This document shows positions 2,809 to 48,797 of a stretch of 64,000 bases of DNA, piece after piece. A program made the position numbers and the translations under genes. The stretch's first letter is position 1; each line of letters begins with the position of its first letter. Below the pieces are notes generated by a model. That model was not told the origin of the DNA. It saw only the letters and a program-made list of their open reading frames with translations, and ran no database searches. Location of the stretch: the NCBI GenBank assembly GCA_002189035.1, contig CM007990.1:5332001-5396000 (forward strand). The letters are read 5' to 3'. This DNA is from Utricularia gibba (Eukaryota > Plantae > Magnoliophyta).

Positions 2809-3282
2809 CCTTGCCGGATCCTTCTTTTCGGATAAAAAAAACTCGATATCAGCCAATATTACTCCTTCGGTCGAAACACAGGATCTCGACAGAAGGAAAA
2901 TGAATGAGGACGCAGACGCTTCCGATTCGAAGATAACCCAGATCACATAAACCGACAACTTCAAGCTACAACCGAGAAAGAGATTCAAGACGAAACCATC
3001 TTGGACTCTTGTCGTGGAATGAGAGCAGACACAAAGCGATTTATGAGGAGCAAATCGCGGATCCTCCGCAAGATCTTGCGTATGGCGTCAGCGTCAAATT
3101 TCAAGGCTGCAAATGAATGGAACCCGCAAGATCTCGCAACTTGCAAGTGTGTCTCCTCGATGTTCTAAAAATCACCAAAATGCCATTATCTCATATTTTC
3201 TTTTAAGAATCTCCATTGCTTGGATGACCCAAGCTGCGCTCGTACAAGGGGGCTTCAGTTTCCAAGTCGCAGATTTTGGAAG

Positions 3283-3363
3283 GATTCAATGAGAAGATTA
3301 GACTCTCACTGAGGTGATGCAGCTCCCCAAATGGCAGTGAGAGCAACATAGTTCTGGCGTCAC
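3283..3363 (-). ncRNA. Possible degenerate second copy of the U6-A47 guide snoRNA
   Basis: Same guide CTAATCTTCTC (3301-3291), one spacer nt, then TTGA (3289-3286). C box only weak (GTGACGC, 3363-3357), no clear terminal stem; internal 9-bp hairpin CTCTCACTG...CAGTGAGAG. Boundaries approximate. Confidence 0.35.
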
Positions 3364-4022
3364 ATGACAATGAAATAATGCCTGCCCACATAGCTTATGG
3401 AGGTGAAGCAAAAGAACTGGAAAACAAAGCATTGAAACAATGCAGTCCCTTGGAAGTTCATAATCACAGGTCTGGGGTGGCTGCCCCAGTGTAAAGATGA
3501 AAACGATGAGGAAGCGAGATGCAGACGCAGCACTCCCAAAGGGAAGAAAAGCTTAGTCCCCAACCAGATAGTGAAGTTTCTGAATTGTGTATTCGAAACT
3601 GTATTGTCAAAACCACAAGCTCAGCCACAGGCCAACACATGCCCTTCAGCTTACAGTTTGCAATCAGCAGGCTAGCAACTAGCTTCCCAACTTTTACAAA
3701 AAAGGGGTTGCCTCAGATTCCACTCGGAACTCAATTTCATGGGATACAAACAGTGACACGAGCAGCAGTTCACAAAAGAGGAAGTCTAGGAAATATATAA
3801 CAGGAAATGACATCAGCATAATGCATTCTGTGATCAAGGAATAGCCGTTCTCATACAAGAGGTGTCAGAAAAACGAAAAGCACCCATTATGATCGTCCTC
3901 TTATCAGATATGGAAAAAAAAATCGAACAAAAAGCTACAAGATACGAGAATGAACCAACAAAAACGAACAAATTCTAACACAGCGCCTTAACTAATTGTA
4001 AAGCAGGGGCAACAAGGGAGGA

Positions 4023-4095
4023 GGCCTCAACGAGAAGATTAGACTATCCACATCAACTCTTCGGACATTCTTGTGCAAATGTACTATCATCGGCC
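4023..4095 (-). ncRNA. Box C/D snoRNA, predicted guide for U6 snRNA Am47 (mgU6-47/SNORD7/Z30-type)
   Basis: Minus strand reads GGCC-G-ATGATAG (C, 4090-4084)...CCGA (D', 4064-4061)-AGAGT-TGATGT (C', 4055-4050)...CTAATCTTCTC (4042-4032)-G-TTGA (D, 4030-4027)-GGCC. It has a 4-bp terminal stem and 11 nt perfectly complementary to U6 GAGAAGAUUAG; the fifth nt upstream of D pairs with A47 (human numbering). Confidence 0.75.
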
Positions 4096-4600
4096 GGTAA
4101 GATTTGAAACACTATTTATAAATCAAATTGTTTCATCAGGTAGGAGAGAAAGATCAATTTGTAATCAAAGGCAGATCATTTGAGCTATGCATCCACCCAT
4201 TATATGAAACAAAATGGCTTCTTTAGTCGAAGAACCAGAGAACAGCAAAAACTCCACAAGCATGTTTGGATACATCACCAACAACACGTCTTCATAAGCA
4301 AATCATTCAGAAGATTTGAAAAACCCAACTATCACTACTAAGAATTAGCAACAAAATGTCTGAAAAAAAAAACAAGAATGAGAGAGATATATCAGGATGG
4401 TCGGCATGGCACAAAAAGTGCCGGTACGACGAACGAGACCACATCACAAATCCTCATAGCCCACATTTTTTGAAAGACAAACCTCCTGGCAAAACGAGAA
4501 AGAGGGCTAAAAAAACCGGAACCTTCACATTGCTCAAGAGAGCCATTGATCGGCGGCCAGCAAACTCGATGTCGTGTTCAAATGATCGGGGCCGGTGAGA

Positions 4601-4609
4601 TTAGGGTTT
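4601..4609 (-). promoter_or_regulatory. Telo-box (AAACCCTAA) upstream of the snoRNA candidates
   Basis: Plus strand ttagggttt at 4601-4609. Telo-boxes are typical of plant snoRNA and ribosomal-protein promoters. Confidence 0.5.
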
Positions 4610-5161
4610 ATGAAACGGTAATGGGGGACCGCCCTGCGAAGAGGGAAAAAAAGACGGGGCAAATTTGAATTTCTCGCATTGTTTGTGTGGTGTAACGTTA
4701 TTCATCGCAGATTCAAGCATTGCCCATGGAACCATATACAGTGGCAATTCACCGTTACAGAAGCCATGATCCTCTCTAACCTCACTAGAACACTGATCAA
4801 ACATGAACAGTGTATGCGAAAAGAATACCTTTTCATTCAGGCACCAGTACAAAAAACTCAGGGAGGAAGAAAAAAAGGGTAGGAGCAAAAACTGTGCACC
4901 TCAAGTGAAACGTTGCCTTTTTCGATCTTCAGATTCCAGTTCACTAGCCACTGTTCAAGAGTTTCTGAATCCTTTTTGTCAGGATCTGGTTATGCTCTTC
5001 TGTGTGTGATCAACAGTCAGTCAAGTGTAGTGTTGCCTCTTGTATCCAAATGCTTGCGTTGCAACCGTTTCTGTTCGTGTTTTGGCAAGCGCAGGTTGTA
5101 TTGATAGCTTCCATGATGTGGGTCTCAAATCGGTAGCTGTCTTACTCAGTGGGATTATGAT

Positions 5162-7486
5162 ATGCACAGCATGCGAAAAACTGCTTTATCATTTCCCAGA
5201 ATCTCTTCGCAGTCTGTTTCAATCGGCAGGGAAGGTTATTCAGGCCAAAGTTTTAACCTTTCAGCTAACTCTCGATCATTAACGCTCCAACGACGATGCT
5301 GCACTCACCTGCTCCACAATCCCACGAAAATTGCTTCGGTCGATGAAGCAAAGGCACTTCATGGGCTCTCCCTTACTACGGACTCTGTCTCTCTTTTGGA
5401 CTCGGAGCTTGTTTTCCTCCACAACAACATCATGTCGAAGTATGCATGTTTTGGGGAAGTTCTCTTGGCACGAAAGTTGTTCGACAATATGTGTGTTAGG
5501 AATGTTGTATCATACAACATAATGATAAGCTGTTACAGTCATGATGGGTCATTGAGTGAGGCGTTCAATCTTTTCTATGAGATGAGAAAAGTTGATATCA
5601 AGCCATCGCAGTTCACATTTGGTGTCTTGTTATCATGTGATTGCCTTGATCTGAGTAGTGGAGAAGTGTTGCATGGATTGATTGAAAAGAGTGGAGTGCT
5701 TTATTTGGATGCTTATGTTGGAACGGCGTTGTTGACGATGTATGCAAGGAATGGATTCTGGGACAATGGCGTTGCAGTATTTGAAACTATGCCCAGGAAG
5801 AGCTTGGTGGCACGTAATGCTGTTTTATCCATGTTTGCACAGATGGGGTTTTTACAAGATTGCGTTTTTATGCTATCTCATGCGATGAGTTCAGTGGGAG
5901 TTTCCGAAATTACCTTTGTGAACATCTTATCTGTTATTGAGGAATATGATTTGCAGTTGGGGTATCAAATGCATAGTTTGGTGAAGAAGATGGGTTTCGA
6001 TGGCATGGCATCTGTTTCTAATTGTCTGATTAATATGTATAGTAAGGCGGGAGACTCATCTTTGGCTGAGAAAATGTTTAATGATGCTCCAATAAAGGAC
6101 ATTGTGTCCTGGAACACTCTTCTTGGAGCAGTAGCTTGTAGTGACAAGCCATACAAAGCCCTTTATCTGTTCCTGGAGATGCTTGCAAATGGATTATCAC
6201 CTAACGAAACAACTTTTGCGAGTCTGCTGAAATCGTGTTCAAAAATGCAGACTCCATGTACTGGCGAGTGCATTCATGCCATGATTATAAAGAAAAGATT
6301 GCAAGCAGAAGTTTACGCCGGTAGTGCACTGGTAAAATTTTATGCCAGTTTTGATAAAGGAGAAGAAGTTCAGGCATGCTTTGATGCTATAACCCACAAA
6401 AGCTTGGTGTCATGGAACTCTTTGATAGTTGGATACTCAAACTGGGATTCTTCATTTTTATTGAAGCTAGTTCAAGAGATGATCCATTCGGGTTTTCATC
6501 CGAATGAATTCTCATTTCCAGTGGTGATCAAATCATCTACACAGGTTGAGCTGTTGCAACTTCATTCACTGACAATCAAGACCGGTTACAGTACGAATGC
6601 CTATGTGTCCAGTTCTCTTATGGCTTCTTATGCTAGAAACAATCTTGTCTCTGACGCACTGAACTTGCTCAGTTGTCCTCAAGATGAACTTTCCACTGTT
6701 TCATTGAATATTCTTGCGTGGATTTACAATCGAGCAGGTGAGTTCGAGAAAACTCAGGAACTATATGCTGGAATGGGGAATCCAGATGCTGTATCTTGGA
6801 ACATCTTGATTGCAGCTTGTTCAAGGAATGGTGATTACAAAGAAAGTTTTGAACTTTTTAAACACATGCTCAGATCTGAAGTCCCTCCAGACAATTACAC
6901 TTTTGTCAGCCTATTCAGCGTGTGCACGAGGCTCTGTAACCTTTCTTTAGGGAGCTCTCTCCACGGCCTGATCCTGAAGACAAGCTTCAACCCCTATGAC
7001 ACATTTGTCTGTAACACGATAATCGCCATGTATGGAAAATGTGGGAGCATCGACAGGTGCAGGAAAATCTTCAACGAAACGAAAGACAAGAATATAATAT
7101 CCTGGACAGCCCTTGTCTCAGCCTTGGGACTCCATGGCCAAGCAAATGAAGCCTTGGAAACATTCAGAGAGATTGACAGAGCTGGGCTCAAACCAGACAG
7201 GGTGTCATTTCTTGCTGTTCTTTCAGCCTGTCGACACAAGGGATTTGTTGAAGAGGGGATGAGTCTGTTCAACCAAATGAAACCAGAGTACGGCATGGAA
7301 CCAGATATCGATCACTACGTGGTTGTAGTTGATCTTCTTGCAAGATATGGGCACATAAAGGAGGCCGAGAAGCTGATTCTTGGAATGCCCTTTGCACCTA
7401 ATGCGTTGGTATGGCGTAGTTTTCTGAACGGCTGCAAGCAGCACTCAAGTCATGCGCTTCTTGGACAAACACAATCCTTTTCTTGA
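5162..7486 (+). CDS. Pentatricopeptide repeat protein, PLS class (At3g58590-like), intronless
   Basis: 774-aa ORF with tandem P/L/S motifs (VVSYNIMISCY, IVSWNTLL, AVSWNILIAAC, IISWTALVSALG, PDRVSFLAVLSAC). No recognisable DYW domain. First ATG assumed as start. Confidence 0.93.
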   Translation: MHSMRKTALSFPRISSQSVSIGREGYSGQSFNLSANSRSLTLQRRCCTHLLHNPTKIASVDEAKALHGLSLTTDSVSLLDSELVFLHNNIMSKYACFGEVLLARKLFDNMCVRNVVSYNIMISCYSHDGSLSEAFNLFYEMRKVDIKPSQFTFGVLLSCDCLDLSSGEVLHGLIEKSGVLYLDAYVGTALLTMYARNGFWDNGVAVFETMPRKSLVARNAVLSMFAQMGFLQDCVFMLSHAMSSVGVSEITFVNILSVIEEYDLQLGYQMHSLVKKMGFDGMASVSNCLINMYSKAGDSSLAEKMFNDAPIKDIVSWNTLLGAVACSDKPYKALYLFLEMLANGLSPNETTFASLLKSCSKMQTPCTGECIHAMIIKKRLQAEVYAGSALVKFYASFDKGEEVQACFDAITHKSLVSWNSLIVGYSNWDSSFLLKLVQEMIHSGFHPNEFSFPVVIKSSTQVELLQLHSLTIKTGYSTNAYVSSSLMASYARNNLVSDALNLLSCPQDELSTVSLNILAWIYNRAGEFEKTQELYAGMGNPDAVSWNILIAACSRNGDYKESFELFKHMLRSEVPPDNYTFVSLFSVCTRLCNLSLGSSLHGLILKTSFNPYDTFVCNTIIAMYGKCGSIDRCRKIFNETKDKNIISWTALVSALGLHGQANEALETFREIDRAGLKPDRVSFLAVLSACRHKGFVEEGMSLFNQMKPEYGMEPDIDHYVVVVDLLARYGHIKEAEKLILGMPFAPNALVWRSFLNGCKQHSSHALLGQTQSFS

Positions 7487-25088: not shown

Positions 25089-26611
25089 TGGTTGATGTGG
25101 TACGGCATGCGTTGCTTTATATCCATCCCATTTATAGAAGATTGTACAGCTGGCTTTTCAACTGCGTGATCGTTGACCACCAAAATGCCATGTGTTTTTT
25201 TTTTTTCCTTCTTCAATTGGCATAGTAAATAAATGTATCCGTTTTGTGCATATAGTGTCATCTTACCTTGTGCTTTGGTGAAGAGGGATGGTGTCTTTTT
25301 TTTTTTTTTTTTGAAATCTGCTTCTAAATCTCTTATTGTTTGGATTTTGTTAGGTCGATTTCGCAATAGTGCGAATGGATTTAAAGTTTAGGGTTTAAGA
25401 TAATATTCCAAATGTAGAGATTACAAGGGATTAAAGGAGTACAATGGTGAGATTAAGTGACCTGATTCTCAAAAAGGGGGCTCTTTTGATGTTTTTGAAA
25501 TCATAGGTTTTAATATTTGGAAATTAGAAGTACTTGAGAAAAATCAACTCCTCAAATTTAATGTTTTTAAAATCATGATTTCAATTTAAAATTGGATTTA
25601 ATTTAATCTAAATTCATGACTAATTGAAAAATATTCAATAGGTTTTATTTAAATATTTTAAAGTGTGTAATTAAAAATTATTAAATGTCAATCAATTTCT
25701 TATGAAAATATTATAAACTAAATCGAATGGATGTACCAAACTGCCCCTCCCATGCACCACATGCGTCATGGCATGCTCATCCGCTCGCCATGCAACGTCC
25801 ATCCCGCGCATTCACACATAATTGGCCTAACCACCTGTCTAATGTCGATTCTACCCCCAGCGAGATAGTCTTGAAAAAACGGGTTCAATTTTTAAAATCC
25901 TCAGTTGTTGTTATTTAGAATATTACTAATTTGACATAATTAAATTAGTAAGGAGTGATTTAAGCCCCAACTTGAGGCGGGCTGAAAGGATTTGAGCCCA
26001 TAATTTGTTGGGCTGAAACTCATCTAAATCATAATAAATAGTGTATTTTATTTTTCGAAAAATACTTTTTGAGAATTGATTTTAATAAAATATAAATTAT
26101 TCTAAAACGATACTAAAATACAAATTTAATAATAAAAACGATCATTTTATGTGCATATATATTATAAGTAAAATTGCGTTTCGTTCGCTATGATACGTTG
26201 TTTTTAAGGTTTTTTAGTTGTGGTTTGAAATTCAAATTGTAATGTAGAGTTGTTACCATTTGAATTTGAATGAAGATATGAAGGTTTCCAAAGGGGGGCA
26301 CAACATATGGGAAGGGCTTTTTCGTGAATCCAAATTGTTGTAAGAAGGAAAGTGGCAAGTGCCAGCTTCAGAGTTGGTGTGCAGATGTTTGTTCATTAAA
26401 ACTCCGGCGAATCTTTAGGTTCAAATCTTGACTGAACTTCGGTAAAAAAGAGACAAAACGTATTAATTTCGTTTGCACGGCCAAAACCCATGAAAAAGTT
26501 TCCGCCTTTGCTTTTGTTCCTTCCACTTCCTCCATATTTTCTGTGTACGCGTCTTGATGCCACCTTCTGGGTCACTTTCTTCTGCTTGTGAAACCCGCCA
26601 TTGTTGATAAA

Positions 26612-41225: not shown

Positions 41226-43955
41226 CCTGGTAAGTGCGCCAGCTATTCCTCTCAGCATCATATACACATTTCCAACACCATCTATCTCCTTGAAAGTCAC
41301 TGATGCCCCACTTGGGAGTTACAAGTAGTCTATGTTCGATTTGGTGTTGGTTTTGCAAATGTCGGTGCTCGATTTTCGTCTCATCCTTTTGACATGCGTC
41401 TAGTTTACATATCCACATCCTTGGAAAGTCTGGTTTGTCTTTCAGCTCACATATCCACATCCTTGCAGTGTGAGAGAGCATGCTAATGTCTGCAGCTGAT
41501 GTCCCAAGTTGAACACCACCACGCCTCCATTGTCGCTACTTCGCTTATGCAACAAGTGGTACTCCCATGTCCCTTCAACCCACAACAATGATCCCTTTTC
41601 TTGTCCTTAATTTCTGTATCACTGAACAACGCTTCCATGTGTTCGAAATTGTGTTTTAAAAATGGGTGGTTGGTTGGTTGGTTTAATCATGAATTGGGTT
41701 GAATTCCTTGTATAATAGTATGCATCCGGTTCAATACTTTTTTAATTATACTTAGAAAAATATAAATTATTGTTTAAATGGTCTGAATCATTCTCGGGTT
41801 TCTTCAGATGTTTGATGCAGTCGTTTTAAATGTATGAAAATGTTGAAATTGATCAGTTCATGAACAAAGCCCGGACGTCCGCACTAGCAGCAGGTAACGG
41901 GCCCCAAAAGCCCATTATTTAATGGGCCTTAAAGTCATATCTTAAAATTACCACTTCCCGGCCCGTCACATGGCGCATAATCAACCAATGGTAGCACAGT
42001 ACATGAATTTCATCGTGTAGGCATCTGCATAGCATGATTCCATCTTTCTTTTGGAGGGAAAAGTTAGAACTTAGAGTCTCGTAACATTCCCATACATACG
42101 ATGAGAATTATGTTCATTTGATATGCTCTTCAAAACATACGTGATTTGTAAAACAATTGCTTAATCAATACAATACATTAATAAAATACAATAAAACATA
42201 ATGAGTTTAATTTAAATATACAAATAAACGTACCTAATAATAAAGCAGTTATGAGAAGGGTCAGTGCATTCCCCTTGTTGATTATGCGCCTAACTCGTGG
42301 TCATTAAATGCAATCCCCTTCCCCTTGATTATGCACCTGCATCTGTCCATTATTTAGCTTCATTTAATACAGTTAAAAAATATTAATAATAATGACGATG
42401 AAGCGTTCCTTCTTTTTTTTTTAATTAAAAAAGGGGAAAAAAAGAAAAGAAAAGGCGTCAATTTCATCCATCGGGTGTGTGATGGATTCAGGAACAAAGT
42501 CCAACAATCATGCGCAATACTTTAACATATGGTAGGCGACATCTGGCGAAAACGACGCCGTTGTGAAGCGCACTCATCGCGACAAATCGTTCCGGCCACT
42601 AGATGGAATGGAATCCCCCACATCTCAAATTCTAGGGCAGCAGCGACATCCAACTGCAACTCCAATATTATAAAGTAATTTTCCCCCGAACGGAGTTTTC
42701 GGTGGCGATGGTACTAGCCTTACCTGCCTATCTACTATAATGCCTTCGGAATTGCGCACAATCAATGGCGATTGGATTGGATTGTGTTCGCGCACATGCG
42801 GAAACGGCAGGCAGCCGGCAGAGGGCAATGCGGATGCTGTTCGCGGCTGCCGCCATCTATCTTCCTCGTAGCCTCGACTCCATCAAATGAATGGAGGCCC
42901 GGTTCTACCCCCTGATTCCGATTCCATCTGGTACTTTTCTCTCCCCCTATCCTCGATATCTCCACGCGGATTAAAAAATAAAAAAAATCTTTTTAGAAAT
43001 TGTAATTATATATATGCTCGTATTAATTAAATTAGAAAATTCCACACCATGGTTTTGTATCTTTTTGTGTGACTTGTGTTGCATTAAAATAATTAAATTT
43101 GTATGGAAGAATAATCAATAAGTATAAGAAAAGACGTATTGTCATAAAATTTATTTGTAAAAAGAAATTGATTCCCAAAAATTATTTCTTCAAAGCATAG
43201 AAATCTTCTCTTACTTTGAAAAATTCGCGTGAAATTATTATTAGGGTTTATTTAGTAAATTGAAGGTGTAGTTTTGGATAGGTGAAGTAGGATTTTGGAA
43301 CTTTATTTACCTGACAAAAAACATTGAATTGGATTGATTTATCCGGCTGCGCGTCCGTGTCGAGTGGCGTATCGGTGGGGATCCCATCAAACTTTATTTG
43401 TTGTTATTTATTTATTTTTTATAAAATTGTAGAGGAGGAGGTGGATGAGTGAGCCAAAGCGTTTCACGTAGTGCTTGCATCCTGGGTCCGGGGGGCGTTG
43501 TGGGGGGATACAGCGCTTGATGATGACAGCCTAAAGCCCACAGCTTTCTCTCTTTGATTTCTCTTCTTCCGTGCGAGAGCATTGTTCCACTAACCGACGA
43601 CGCGCATTCCCACCTTCTTTTGTTGTTTTCTCGACCGCGCCTTGCGCCGGGCCGTAGCTTCCAGTACATACCCAGATCTCGATTTCTATTCTTGGGTTCC
43701 TTGGAATCGAGCGAATTTTGAGTTTCCTGAGTGGGTTTTTCTGTTTTCTTTGGGTTTTTTTTTGTGGCTAGGGGGAGATTTGAGAATCTGAATCTCGTGT
43801 TGTATTGCCGACATCCCAGATTTGCAGCTGGGGGCTGAATTCATCTGTTGTTCTTCGGGGAAAAGATTAGGTTTGGGTGGTGATATGGAGGCTCCCAAAG
43901 TATTTGACTTGTTCTGAATTCGCTGGTGAATGTGTGTGTCATACGGAAGTAGGGG

Positions 43956-46624: not shown

Positions 46625-48797
46625 TCAAAGACCTGTGTTCTGCGATAAGGCAGCATCAACTATCTCCTTGATAAATGTTCTGAAGCAATCTGTGCAGGTG
46701 TTGGGCAACAGGATTGGTTTCTGAAGAAAGGAAGTGTTATTGACATGTGAGCATGCAGGTACTGGGATTGAACAGAAACCAGGTCTGTGGGCTTCGAAAC
46801 CACACGCAGCTAATATGGAGTGTGTCGCGCGTCTAGCGACCTCCTTGAATGCATCAGCATCTGGGTGAAGACAAGAGGCTAGTTATTACAGATGAAATGG
46901 ATAATGCTATGCACGCATGGCAGGAGCCTAAATGGAAGCATTCAAAATACTACTTGTAGTATGGGAAAGCGAAAATGCACTGATCATGTACCTAGTTTCT
47001 CCTTTTTTGTTCGAAGTTCCAAGTAGCGTTTCACCTGAGATCGAACCTCGCTCTTTGCCTCATCATACTTCTGAGTGGGAAGACTTGTACTTTCCAATCT
47101 TTTCTTTCTAGCAGCATGGCTGCCAGCACTACTGCATGAAAGGGGAGCTTTGTGAACCCCACTATCTGTATCCGAAGACATTGACTCCGATGCAGTCGAG
47201 CTCATGGGTACTTTTACAGAACTCCTTGTGATGTTCTCTAAGTTTCTTGGACAAGGATTTACGGGTGAGTTATGAGCATTGAATGATTCTGGTTCCAAGT
47301 GAGCTCGTGAATTGGTTGTCGTTGACCCCATTGCATCACCATAGAAAGGTCTCCTCATTGACCCCTCGAACCTACGTTCCATGGGGAATGACTCTTCATG
47401 CAAATCTCTTTCAAGTGAATGATTATTATGATATCCAGATCCAATACTCACAGCATTCCGTGATGATCCTCTTCTGGTATCGGGGATTACTCTGTGAATG
47501 TGAGACACATTTCGACCATTTCCATGGCCATTCGACTTCATGCATTCCTGAGACCTAATGCTGGAACTTTCATGCCTCTGAGTAATAGCCTTGGCTTTAT
47601 CCATCATTTTCCAAGCTTTCTGTATCTCATGTTCCCTATCATCAGCTTTCGGCAGAGAAGAACTGCATTGAGCTAGTTGCCCACAAGACGCACTAGATAA
47701 TGATTGTTGAGCAACACCACTAGCACAGGAAATCCGACCTGAGCATTCACTATCACCTGTGCTGTTAGAGAACTGCAGGACGCCTCTTTGAATGGCAGTC
47801 CAATTTTTACGCAGTAAACATATGCGGTTGTTCAGATTCCGACGGTAAGGCAAAGTTCTTGTGTTTATCTTGGCTTTATGCTGTGTACCAGAGTTTTGGC
47901 TCACCAAACTAGCTACATCAACAGTATTTACCTCAATAGCAGGACTACTGAGCTGTGATTGCCCAGAATCAATCGAAAGGTTTCTATTCCTCCGAATATC
48001 ACCGGCAGGAGAGTCTCGTACAATATCAAAGATGGAAATCGCTTCCTCTTCTGAAGATATATTTTGACCTCTAACAACTCTAATTGGACATTCAGATTCC
48101 TGATCTGATTCACATTTCAGGCGTTCATCCCTCAAAACGGTACATTCCTGGCAAAACCAGTCACCTTCAGGAACGGTTGCACCCAGACCTATGCAGTAAG
48201 TATGAGCAGCAGTGTCACAAAGATCACATAAAAGAAGTAGAAATTCATCATCTTGGCCAAGACAAACACTGCATCTGATTTCAGAATATGGATCTGGGGG
48301 CCAATTGTCGCATTACCTTGAACATGATAAACCTGCACGGATGAGGAATAGATAAAAAAGCAAAACTTTGACTATTGACACAAAGGTATCCTATCAAATA
48401 CCTGATCACGAACTGGCACTTGAACAACGCGTTCAGAATCGAACACGTGCGGCTTTGCAGGGCGACGAATAGTGGAAAATCTACGCTTACAGAGGGGACA
48501 TTTGGATTCAACTTTCGCCCACTCCATGATACAGAGGAAACAGAAGTAGTGATCGCAGGAGTCGATATACCCCCTGCTAACTCCGGTAGTTCCAGATTCT
48601 GACAAGCAAATTCCGCATGAATCACCGCATAATTCTTCATCCTTGGCGTCATTCGTCACCAGCGTTTCCGGTTCTTCCTGGATTTTGGATTTCCCTTTCG
48701 AAATCAACGAAGTTGGCGATATGAAAGGGGATCCAGGGTCCTCGCTTAGGGTTTTCTGTCGTTTATCTGGGGTAGTTCCCTCGTCCGCACAATCCAT
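46625..48797 (-). CDS. RING + PHD finger protein (PHRF1-like) with an apparent 1-nt frameshift at 48296-48300
   Basis: Exon 48797-48402 carries a C3HC4 RING (CGIC...CDHYFCFLCIMEWAKVESKCPLC). Exon 48332-46992 carries a PHD (CSVC...CDLCDTAAHTYC...WFCQEC) that is out of frame with the exon start. Last exon 46860-46625 (DAFKEVARRATHSILAACG). Confidence 0.8.

Follow-up and report, generated by a model that had tools for sequence, protein, structure and literature searches.

A box C/D snoRNA-derived unit with a guide to the U6 ACAGAGA box in a damaged snoRNA cluster of Utricularia gibba

A short element in a 64,000-nt stretch of Utricularia gibba DNA (hereafter the window) raises the question of whether a box C/D snoRNA with two altered boxes can still guide the methylation of U6 snRNA, or whether it is a copy on its way to loss. 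The original prediction described a hidden guide for U6 A47 in which the departures of box C and box D from the consensus compensate each other, and regarded the unit as unusual for that reason.

The boxes C, D′, C′ and D were found in the predicted order inside a GGCC/GGCC stem, each element at its predicted place (Table 1). The spacers from C to D′ and from C′ to D are both 19 nt long, and the loop between D′ and C′ measures 5 nt. The first nucleotide of box C is nt 6, and four nucleotides follow box D, in keeping with the terminal-stem arrangement of box C/D RNAs (box C 4–5 nt from the 5′ end, box D 3–5 nt from the 3′ end). Compared with the strict RUGAUGA/CUGA consensus, AUGAUAG agrees at five of seven positions and UUGA at three of four. 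In an Infernal/Rfam search, as the original prediction had proposed, no model attains its threshold on the candidate, and all the matches seen at gathering and at E ≤ 10 are sub-threshold. MFE folding is uninformative (z = −0.08), as is expected of C/D RNAs, and no terminal repeats pointing to transposon capture were found. In summary, the candidate is a genuine, unannotated snoRNA-derived unit of a known kind with one clear guide, and both its box C/D type and its U6 A47-type guide agree with what had been predicted from the sequence.

Table 1. Features of the candidate unit, its cluster and their surroundings (positions in the window).
Feature	Position	Strand	Basis or remark
Box C/D snoRNA unit (candidate), 73 nt	4023..4095	-	sequence reading and weak Rfam matches
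Candidate terminal stem GGCC/GGCC, 4 bp	4095-4092/4026-4023	-	sequence reading
Candidate box C AUGAUAG, after a single G	4090-4084	-	sequence reading
Candidate D′ box CCGA	4064-4061	-	sequence reading
Candidate C′ box UGAUGU	4055-4050	-	sequence reading
Candidate U6 guide CUAAUCUUCUC, then a single G	4042-4032	-	sequence reading
Candidate box D UUGA	4030-4027	-	sequence reading
Sub-threshold Rfam match on candidate: snoZ168	same span as 4023..4095		16.3 bits
Sub-threshold Rfam match on candidate: snoU6-47	same span as 4023..4095		13.9 bits vs gathering 54
Sub-threshold Rfam match on candidate: snoZ30a	same span as 4023..4095		13.8 bits vs gathering 80
snoZ43 copy, first unit of the cluster	4370..4462	-	Rfam 50.2 bits vs gathering 43
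snR60/Z15 (plant U80) copy	4128..4212	-	Rfam 44 bits vs gathering 41
snoR1 copy	3809..3897	-	Rfam 49.6 bits vs gathering 49
Telo-box AAACCCTAA	4601..4609	-	about 140 nt upstream of Z43; then GGCCCC, site II-like
Partial second copy of candidate 3′ end: AGUCUAAUCUUCUC-A-UUGA-AUCC	3281..3307	-	23/27 identical
Possible third, internally deleted remnant: GUGAUAG ... AAUCUUCUGAAUGA	4303..4337	-	weak
Intronless PPR gene, orthologue of At3g58590	5162-7486	+	best protein matches in Lamiales, 59-65% identity
Ankyrin-repeat AAA ATPase gene (CfxQ-like), multi-exon	about 600-2808, ATG 2808-2806	-	protein matches

The 11-nt guide is perfectly complementary to U6 GAGAAGAUUAG and ends 1 nt before box D. The duplex is thus longer than the minimum of 10 bp expected of an antisense element beside box D, and a known Nm site lies at D+5. 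The nucleotide at D+5 pairs with the last A of ACAGAGA, which is A47 in human U6 and A42/43 in Arabidopsis. Both the perfect antisense and the position given by the D+5 rule had been predicted, and both hold; the Rfam consensus of snoZ30a and snoU6-47 contains the identical 11-mer in the identical register, 1 nt 5′ of box D. A eudicot U6 reads AGAGAAGAUUAGCAUGGCCCCU, according to flax U6 reverse primers (PMC11991013), and CTAATCTTCTC, which is present in many U6 probes, agrees with this reading. The D guide of Arabidopsis U27-2 is directed to Am42/U6, the equivalent of human Am47 (PMC2685112, Table 2), and methylation at the ACAGAGA site has been detected by RiboMeth-seq and assigned to U27 (PMC8053127, Table 3). 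Judged from its complementarity, the guide of the candidate would direct 2′-O-methylation to the final A of ACAGAGA in U6. The idea that the unit is special or new finds no support, as U27-2 already guides this site in Arabidopsis (PMC2685112, PMC8053127).

The same guide, 1 nt before box D, is that of SNORD7/mgU6-47/Z30 (Rfam snoZ30a and snoU6-47), and the duplex is as long as that of N. crassa CD11 (11 bp, 11/0 match; PMC2780460, Table 1). U6-47 guides are carried on differing backbones in human mgU6-47, S. pombe mgU6-47 and N. crassa CD11 (PMC2780460). The scores of the snoZ30a and snoU6-47 models on the candidate are far under gathering, and no sequence similarity extends beyond the guide and boxes, which points to functional analogy or deep homology with SNORD7-type guides rather than to family membership.

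Box-like motifs and a U6-complementary 11-mer might also have come together by chance, without snoRNA ancestry. Such a coincidence gains some plausibility from the frequency of perfect 10–11-mers antisense to U6 beside NUGA, of which about 0.3 are expected by chance per 64-kb window. However, a relaxed version of the full motif (an antisense stretch of 10 nt or more to the U6 core, 0–2 nt before NUGA, together with RUGAU and 4 bp or more of stem) was seen in just four of 300 first-order Markov surrogates of the window (1.3%), and the candidate lies with normal spacing between two Rfam-detected snoRNAs, on the right strand, and has a second partial copy. Since the site is part of a 650-nt same-strand cluster of Rfam-detected snoRNAs, chance is negligible, and we consider an origin of this kind extremely improbable.

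We then asked what the altered boxes would mean for the K-turn. Its core can be read from the sequence as the pairs G8·A69, A9·G68, C4–G70, U10·U67 and A11–U66. Eukaryotic SNU13 requires both sheared G·A pairs plus the −1 pair of stem I (PMC8413462). The two changes in the boxes, G to A at C6 and C to U at D1, fall on the two partners of stem II and turn a G–C pair into A–U. Since the unit has all the pairs that SNU13 requires, together with a 4-bp stem and A–U at C6:D1, it could still bind SNU13 and NOP58. The candidate may, then, be a working snoRNA or scaRNA, in which the A–U pair would keep stem II, the snoRNP would assemble and U6 would be methylated. We give this reading a real chance, although one below even; the intact core and stem, the regular spacing of the four boxes and the perfect guide in register all speak for it. 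Position 7 of box C is a G facing G, which counts against it; this position may vary in the Arabidopsis search patterns of PMC2685112, so the G is not alarming.

Covariation between C6 and D1 is the mark of an established Arabidopsis subgroup, RUGAUU[UAG] with AUGA, of which eight known and two new members were reported (PMC2685112). These ten or so snoRNAs support a working candidate by analogy, in that the compensatory principle is shared, whereas the pair is U–A there and A–U in the candidate. The A–U orientation, RUGAUAN with UUGA, is not among the search patterns of PMC2685112, and no example of a RUGAUAN/UUGA box C/D snoRNA was found in limited literature searching. When metagenomes were scanned for the guide with NUUGA after it, at least 120 loci were returned, and among the matches listed, none is snoRNA-like, all of them being coding-like or due to chance. 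A GTGATAT...TTGA match that recurs at three of these loci was set aside, as it has by eye the appearance of a protein-coding region. The predicted compensatory change does fall on stem II pairing partners, but its novelty is not supported, since the covariation subgroup is known (PMC2685112). It is conceivable, though we doubt it, that RUGAUAN/UUGA is a working and overlooked K-turn variant, reached via a G·U intermediate, and that the unit is a U6-only U27 descendant methylating ACAGAGA; the variant would be the A–U mirror of the RUGAUU[UAG]/AUGA class, amid a decaying cluster.

The complementarity of the two changes discriminates little between decay and function. By our own rough estimate, the probability that both transitions arise by decay at about 6–12% divergence is a few per thousand, and A6:U1 is probably no commoner than that among functional plant snoRNAs. 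On these rough figures, neutral decay accounts for the compensatory pair about as readily as selection does, which weighs against a working unit, and the 11-nt guide would, by an equally rough estimate, be kept 25–50% of the time at the same divergence. The pair is real in the sequence and in principle precedented; selection may or may not lie behind it.

The surroundings of the candidate place it in a family of genes. At Rfam gathering, three box C/D snoRNAs flank it on the same strand, and the order on the minus strand is snoZ43, snR60/Z15, the candidate as the third of four, and snoR1, with the candidate starting 32 nt past the end of Z15. Plant snoRNA and ribosomal-protein genes typically bear a telo-box followed by GGCCCC in their promoters, and the element upstream of Z43 is likely the promoter of the cluster. 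Together, the Rfam neighbours and the telo-box mark this as a textbook plant polycistronic snoRNA cluster, presumably a single transcription unit. The second unit, snR60/Z15, corresponds to plant U80 (PMC2780460, Table 1).

All three neighbours are damaged. Z43 has lost box D, with CUUG where the family has CUGA (Rfam alignment), and its terminal stem is unpaired (GGGC/GUUU). In Z15, box C reads AUAAUGG, so that the G of the first sheared G·A pair (K-turn position 1b) is gone; the D′ box is AUGA, the nucleotide at D′+5 (4184), which faces the nucleotide to be methylated, is C where the family has U, and the D guide contains one internal mismatch. The box C region of snoR1 (AUCAUAAUGG) lacks UGAUGA and there is an 8-nt internal deletion, whereas the D′ guide and box D of this unit remain undamaged. 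Z15 and snoR1 fail the SNU13 requirement and the candidate passes it, being the only unit of the cluster with an intact K-turn core. Judged by their boxes and guides, three of the four units no longer have all that snoRNP assembly or guiding requires.

The damage to three Rfam-recognised neighbours suggests that the candidate is a redundant copy, expressed weakly or not at all, that is being lost in a decaying cluster, and this is the reading to which we incline. Several findings run against it: the candidate alone keeps all the K-turn essentials together with a perfect 11-nt guide in register, its two box changes compensate each other, and UUGA is also present in the partial second copy. For a working snoRNA, conversely, the three dead neighbours are an unfavourable setting. 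According to the reading that we favour, a telo-box-driven polycistronic cluster of four units would be a diverged, lineage-specific paralogue undergoing decay, and the candidate would be its best-preserved unit.

The partial second copy lies 741 nt downstream of the candidate, between the cluster and the ankyrin-AAA gene, and contains the whole guide, UUGA again and a stem half. As UUGA is common to both copies, the C-to-U change in box D may well predate the duplication and have been tolerated in a working gene, which is a point in favour of function. The partial copy itself was rejected as a full snoRNA, having no box C upstream and no stem, and the guide part alone matches snoU6-47.

Two further observations concern the damaged neighbours. 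A 10-mer, AUAAUGGGUG, is common to the damaged box C regions of the unrelated snoRNAs snoR1 (3881–3890) and Z15 (4194–4203) on the minus strand; it has just two exact copies in the window and is in neither the snoR1 nor the Z15 Rfam consensus. This could reflect micro gene conversion inside the cluster or parallel G-to-A changes. On the same strand, Z43 is bracketed by AG|GUUUGU (GU at 4482–4481) and by a U-run then CAG (AG at 4361–4360), which gives its surroundings (4360–4482, 123 nt) an intron-like look; the contig over 4343–4491 is unspliced.

We also looked for the locus among contigs from four small runs that are guessed to be RNA and whose library types are not on record, comparing them with positions 3250–4650. 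Exact-match contigs, one in each of three small runs, cover 4207–4397, 3837–3988 and 4343–4491 at a depth of 3–7, mainly over spacers and with ends that do not coincide with snoRNA borders. They could stem from a precursor present at a low level, or from DNA contaminating the library. The exact match of spacer contigs from such runs to the locus is in favour of a working candidate. No contig covers 4002–4095 in these four small runs of unrecorded library type, where contigs show presence and not absence, and the candidate's lack of a contig there counts to that extent against its being at work.

A 491-nt contig of run X4 (depth 14.8) represents a paralogous Z15...snoR1 cluster from a different locus. 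Its Z15 has 12 differences and its 38-nt snoR1 part has one, and 299 unalignable letters stand between them, compared with 235 nt in the window. At the position corresponding to 4184, the paralogue has the base of the family consensus, in contrast to the disabling C of the window copy. There is, hence, a better-preserved paralogous cluster in RNA contigs, and its deeper coverage makes a working role for the window copy less probable. The snoRNA parts are far better conserved than the spacers between the two clusters, which implies that selection acted for much of their history and supports function.

The history of the locus was approached through its flanking genes, a PPR gene and an ankyrin-AAA gene that are not neighbours in Paulownia. 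With these genes as anchors, seven loci in five Lamiales genomes were checked over 5–6 kb at the syntenic places. No snoRNA at Rfam gathering and no U6 guide were found near the PPR orthologues of Paulownia, Erythranthe and Buddleja, or near the ankyrin-AAA orthologues of Erythranthe, Paulownia, Penstemon and Salvia. Conservation in relatives, which the original prediction had named as a test, is not seen at these seven loci, and this absence weakens the case for a working unit. Since the cluster is absent at the syntenic places in the relatives checked, it appears not to be ancestral at this position; a lineage-specific, recent placement fits a dispersed duplicate.

The known plant guide to the same site offers a further comparison. 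Arabidopsis U27-2 has a predicted D guide for Am42/U6 and a predicted D′ guide for Am28/18S, and was confirmed by northern analysis (PMC2685112). Like the candidate, it is a box C/D RNA of an intergenic polycistronic cluster with a D guide to the last A of U6 ACAGAGA. U27–U80 clusters are known in rice and Arabidopsis (PMC5122169, PMC2780460), and the candidate adjoins Z15/U80, which argues for its being at work, but it lies downstream, whereas the published order is U27–U80 (PMC5122169). At 73 nt, it is 11 nt shorter than U27-2 (84 nt), and its boxes, AUGAUAG and UUGA, differ from those of U27-2. No Rfam SNORD27 match was found on the candidate at E ≤ 10. U27-2 has the second guide for 18S Am28, whereas the candidate has no significant 18S guide: against a generic 18S 5′ segment, 8% of shuffles do as well as the best duplex of the D′ spacer, which lies elsewhere than at A28. 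An identity with U27 through an 18S A28 D′ guide was accordingly rejected as not significant, and the lack of an 18S match in the D′ region is a further point against a working unit. The U6 guide and the neighbouring U80 favour a U27, while the missing 18S match, the shorter length, the place downstream of U80 and the lack of a SNORD27 match tell against one. By its sequence, the candidate would count as a U6-A47-type guide whose family is uncertain, perhaps a derivative of U27 that has lost its 18S guide. If it works, subfunctionalisation of the dual-guide plant U27 could have left it as a descendant that serves U6 only, and the cluster would be kept for its sake.

The well-formed D′/C′ pair, with a 19-nt spacer upstream of D′, raises a different possibility, namely that the candidate is a functional C/D RNA with its main role elsewhere, such as a D′ guide to rRNA or another RNA, and that its U6 complementarity is inherited and secondary. 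The D′ spacer has no target in the 18S 5′ region, the part of the rRNA with which it was compared, and we regard such a role as unlikely.

The two main readings differ in what they would mean. If the candidate is functional, then CUGA-requiring snoRNA finders and Rfam miss a class of guides, a wider box definition is needed for plant snoRNA inventories and Nm-guide assignments, and the unit is a natural test of the sequence freedom of stem II in the C/D K-turn for NOP58 assembly. More likely it is a relic, and then it is an annotation detail that illustrates the unit-by-unit decay of duplicated plant snoRNA clusters, and a warning that single-sequence compensatory changes are weak evidence. 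The gene type is an ordinary one and the candidate may no longer work; the compensatory pair is nevertheless worth a bench test.

Two observations lie outside these readings. The 158-nt spacer between Z43 and Z15 (4213–4369, minus strand) contains the box-like strings GUGAUAG, AAUGAUUUG, UGAUGU and CUGA and the 8-mer AAUCUUCU; it may be what is left of another snoRNA unit, and no Rfam match was found in it at E ≤ 10. Exact telo-boxes occur four times in the window, against 0.8 expected, and the three other than that of the cluster, all on the minus strand (25388–25396, 43241–43249 and 48746–48754), may mark other promoters of the ribosome-biogenesis type.
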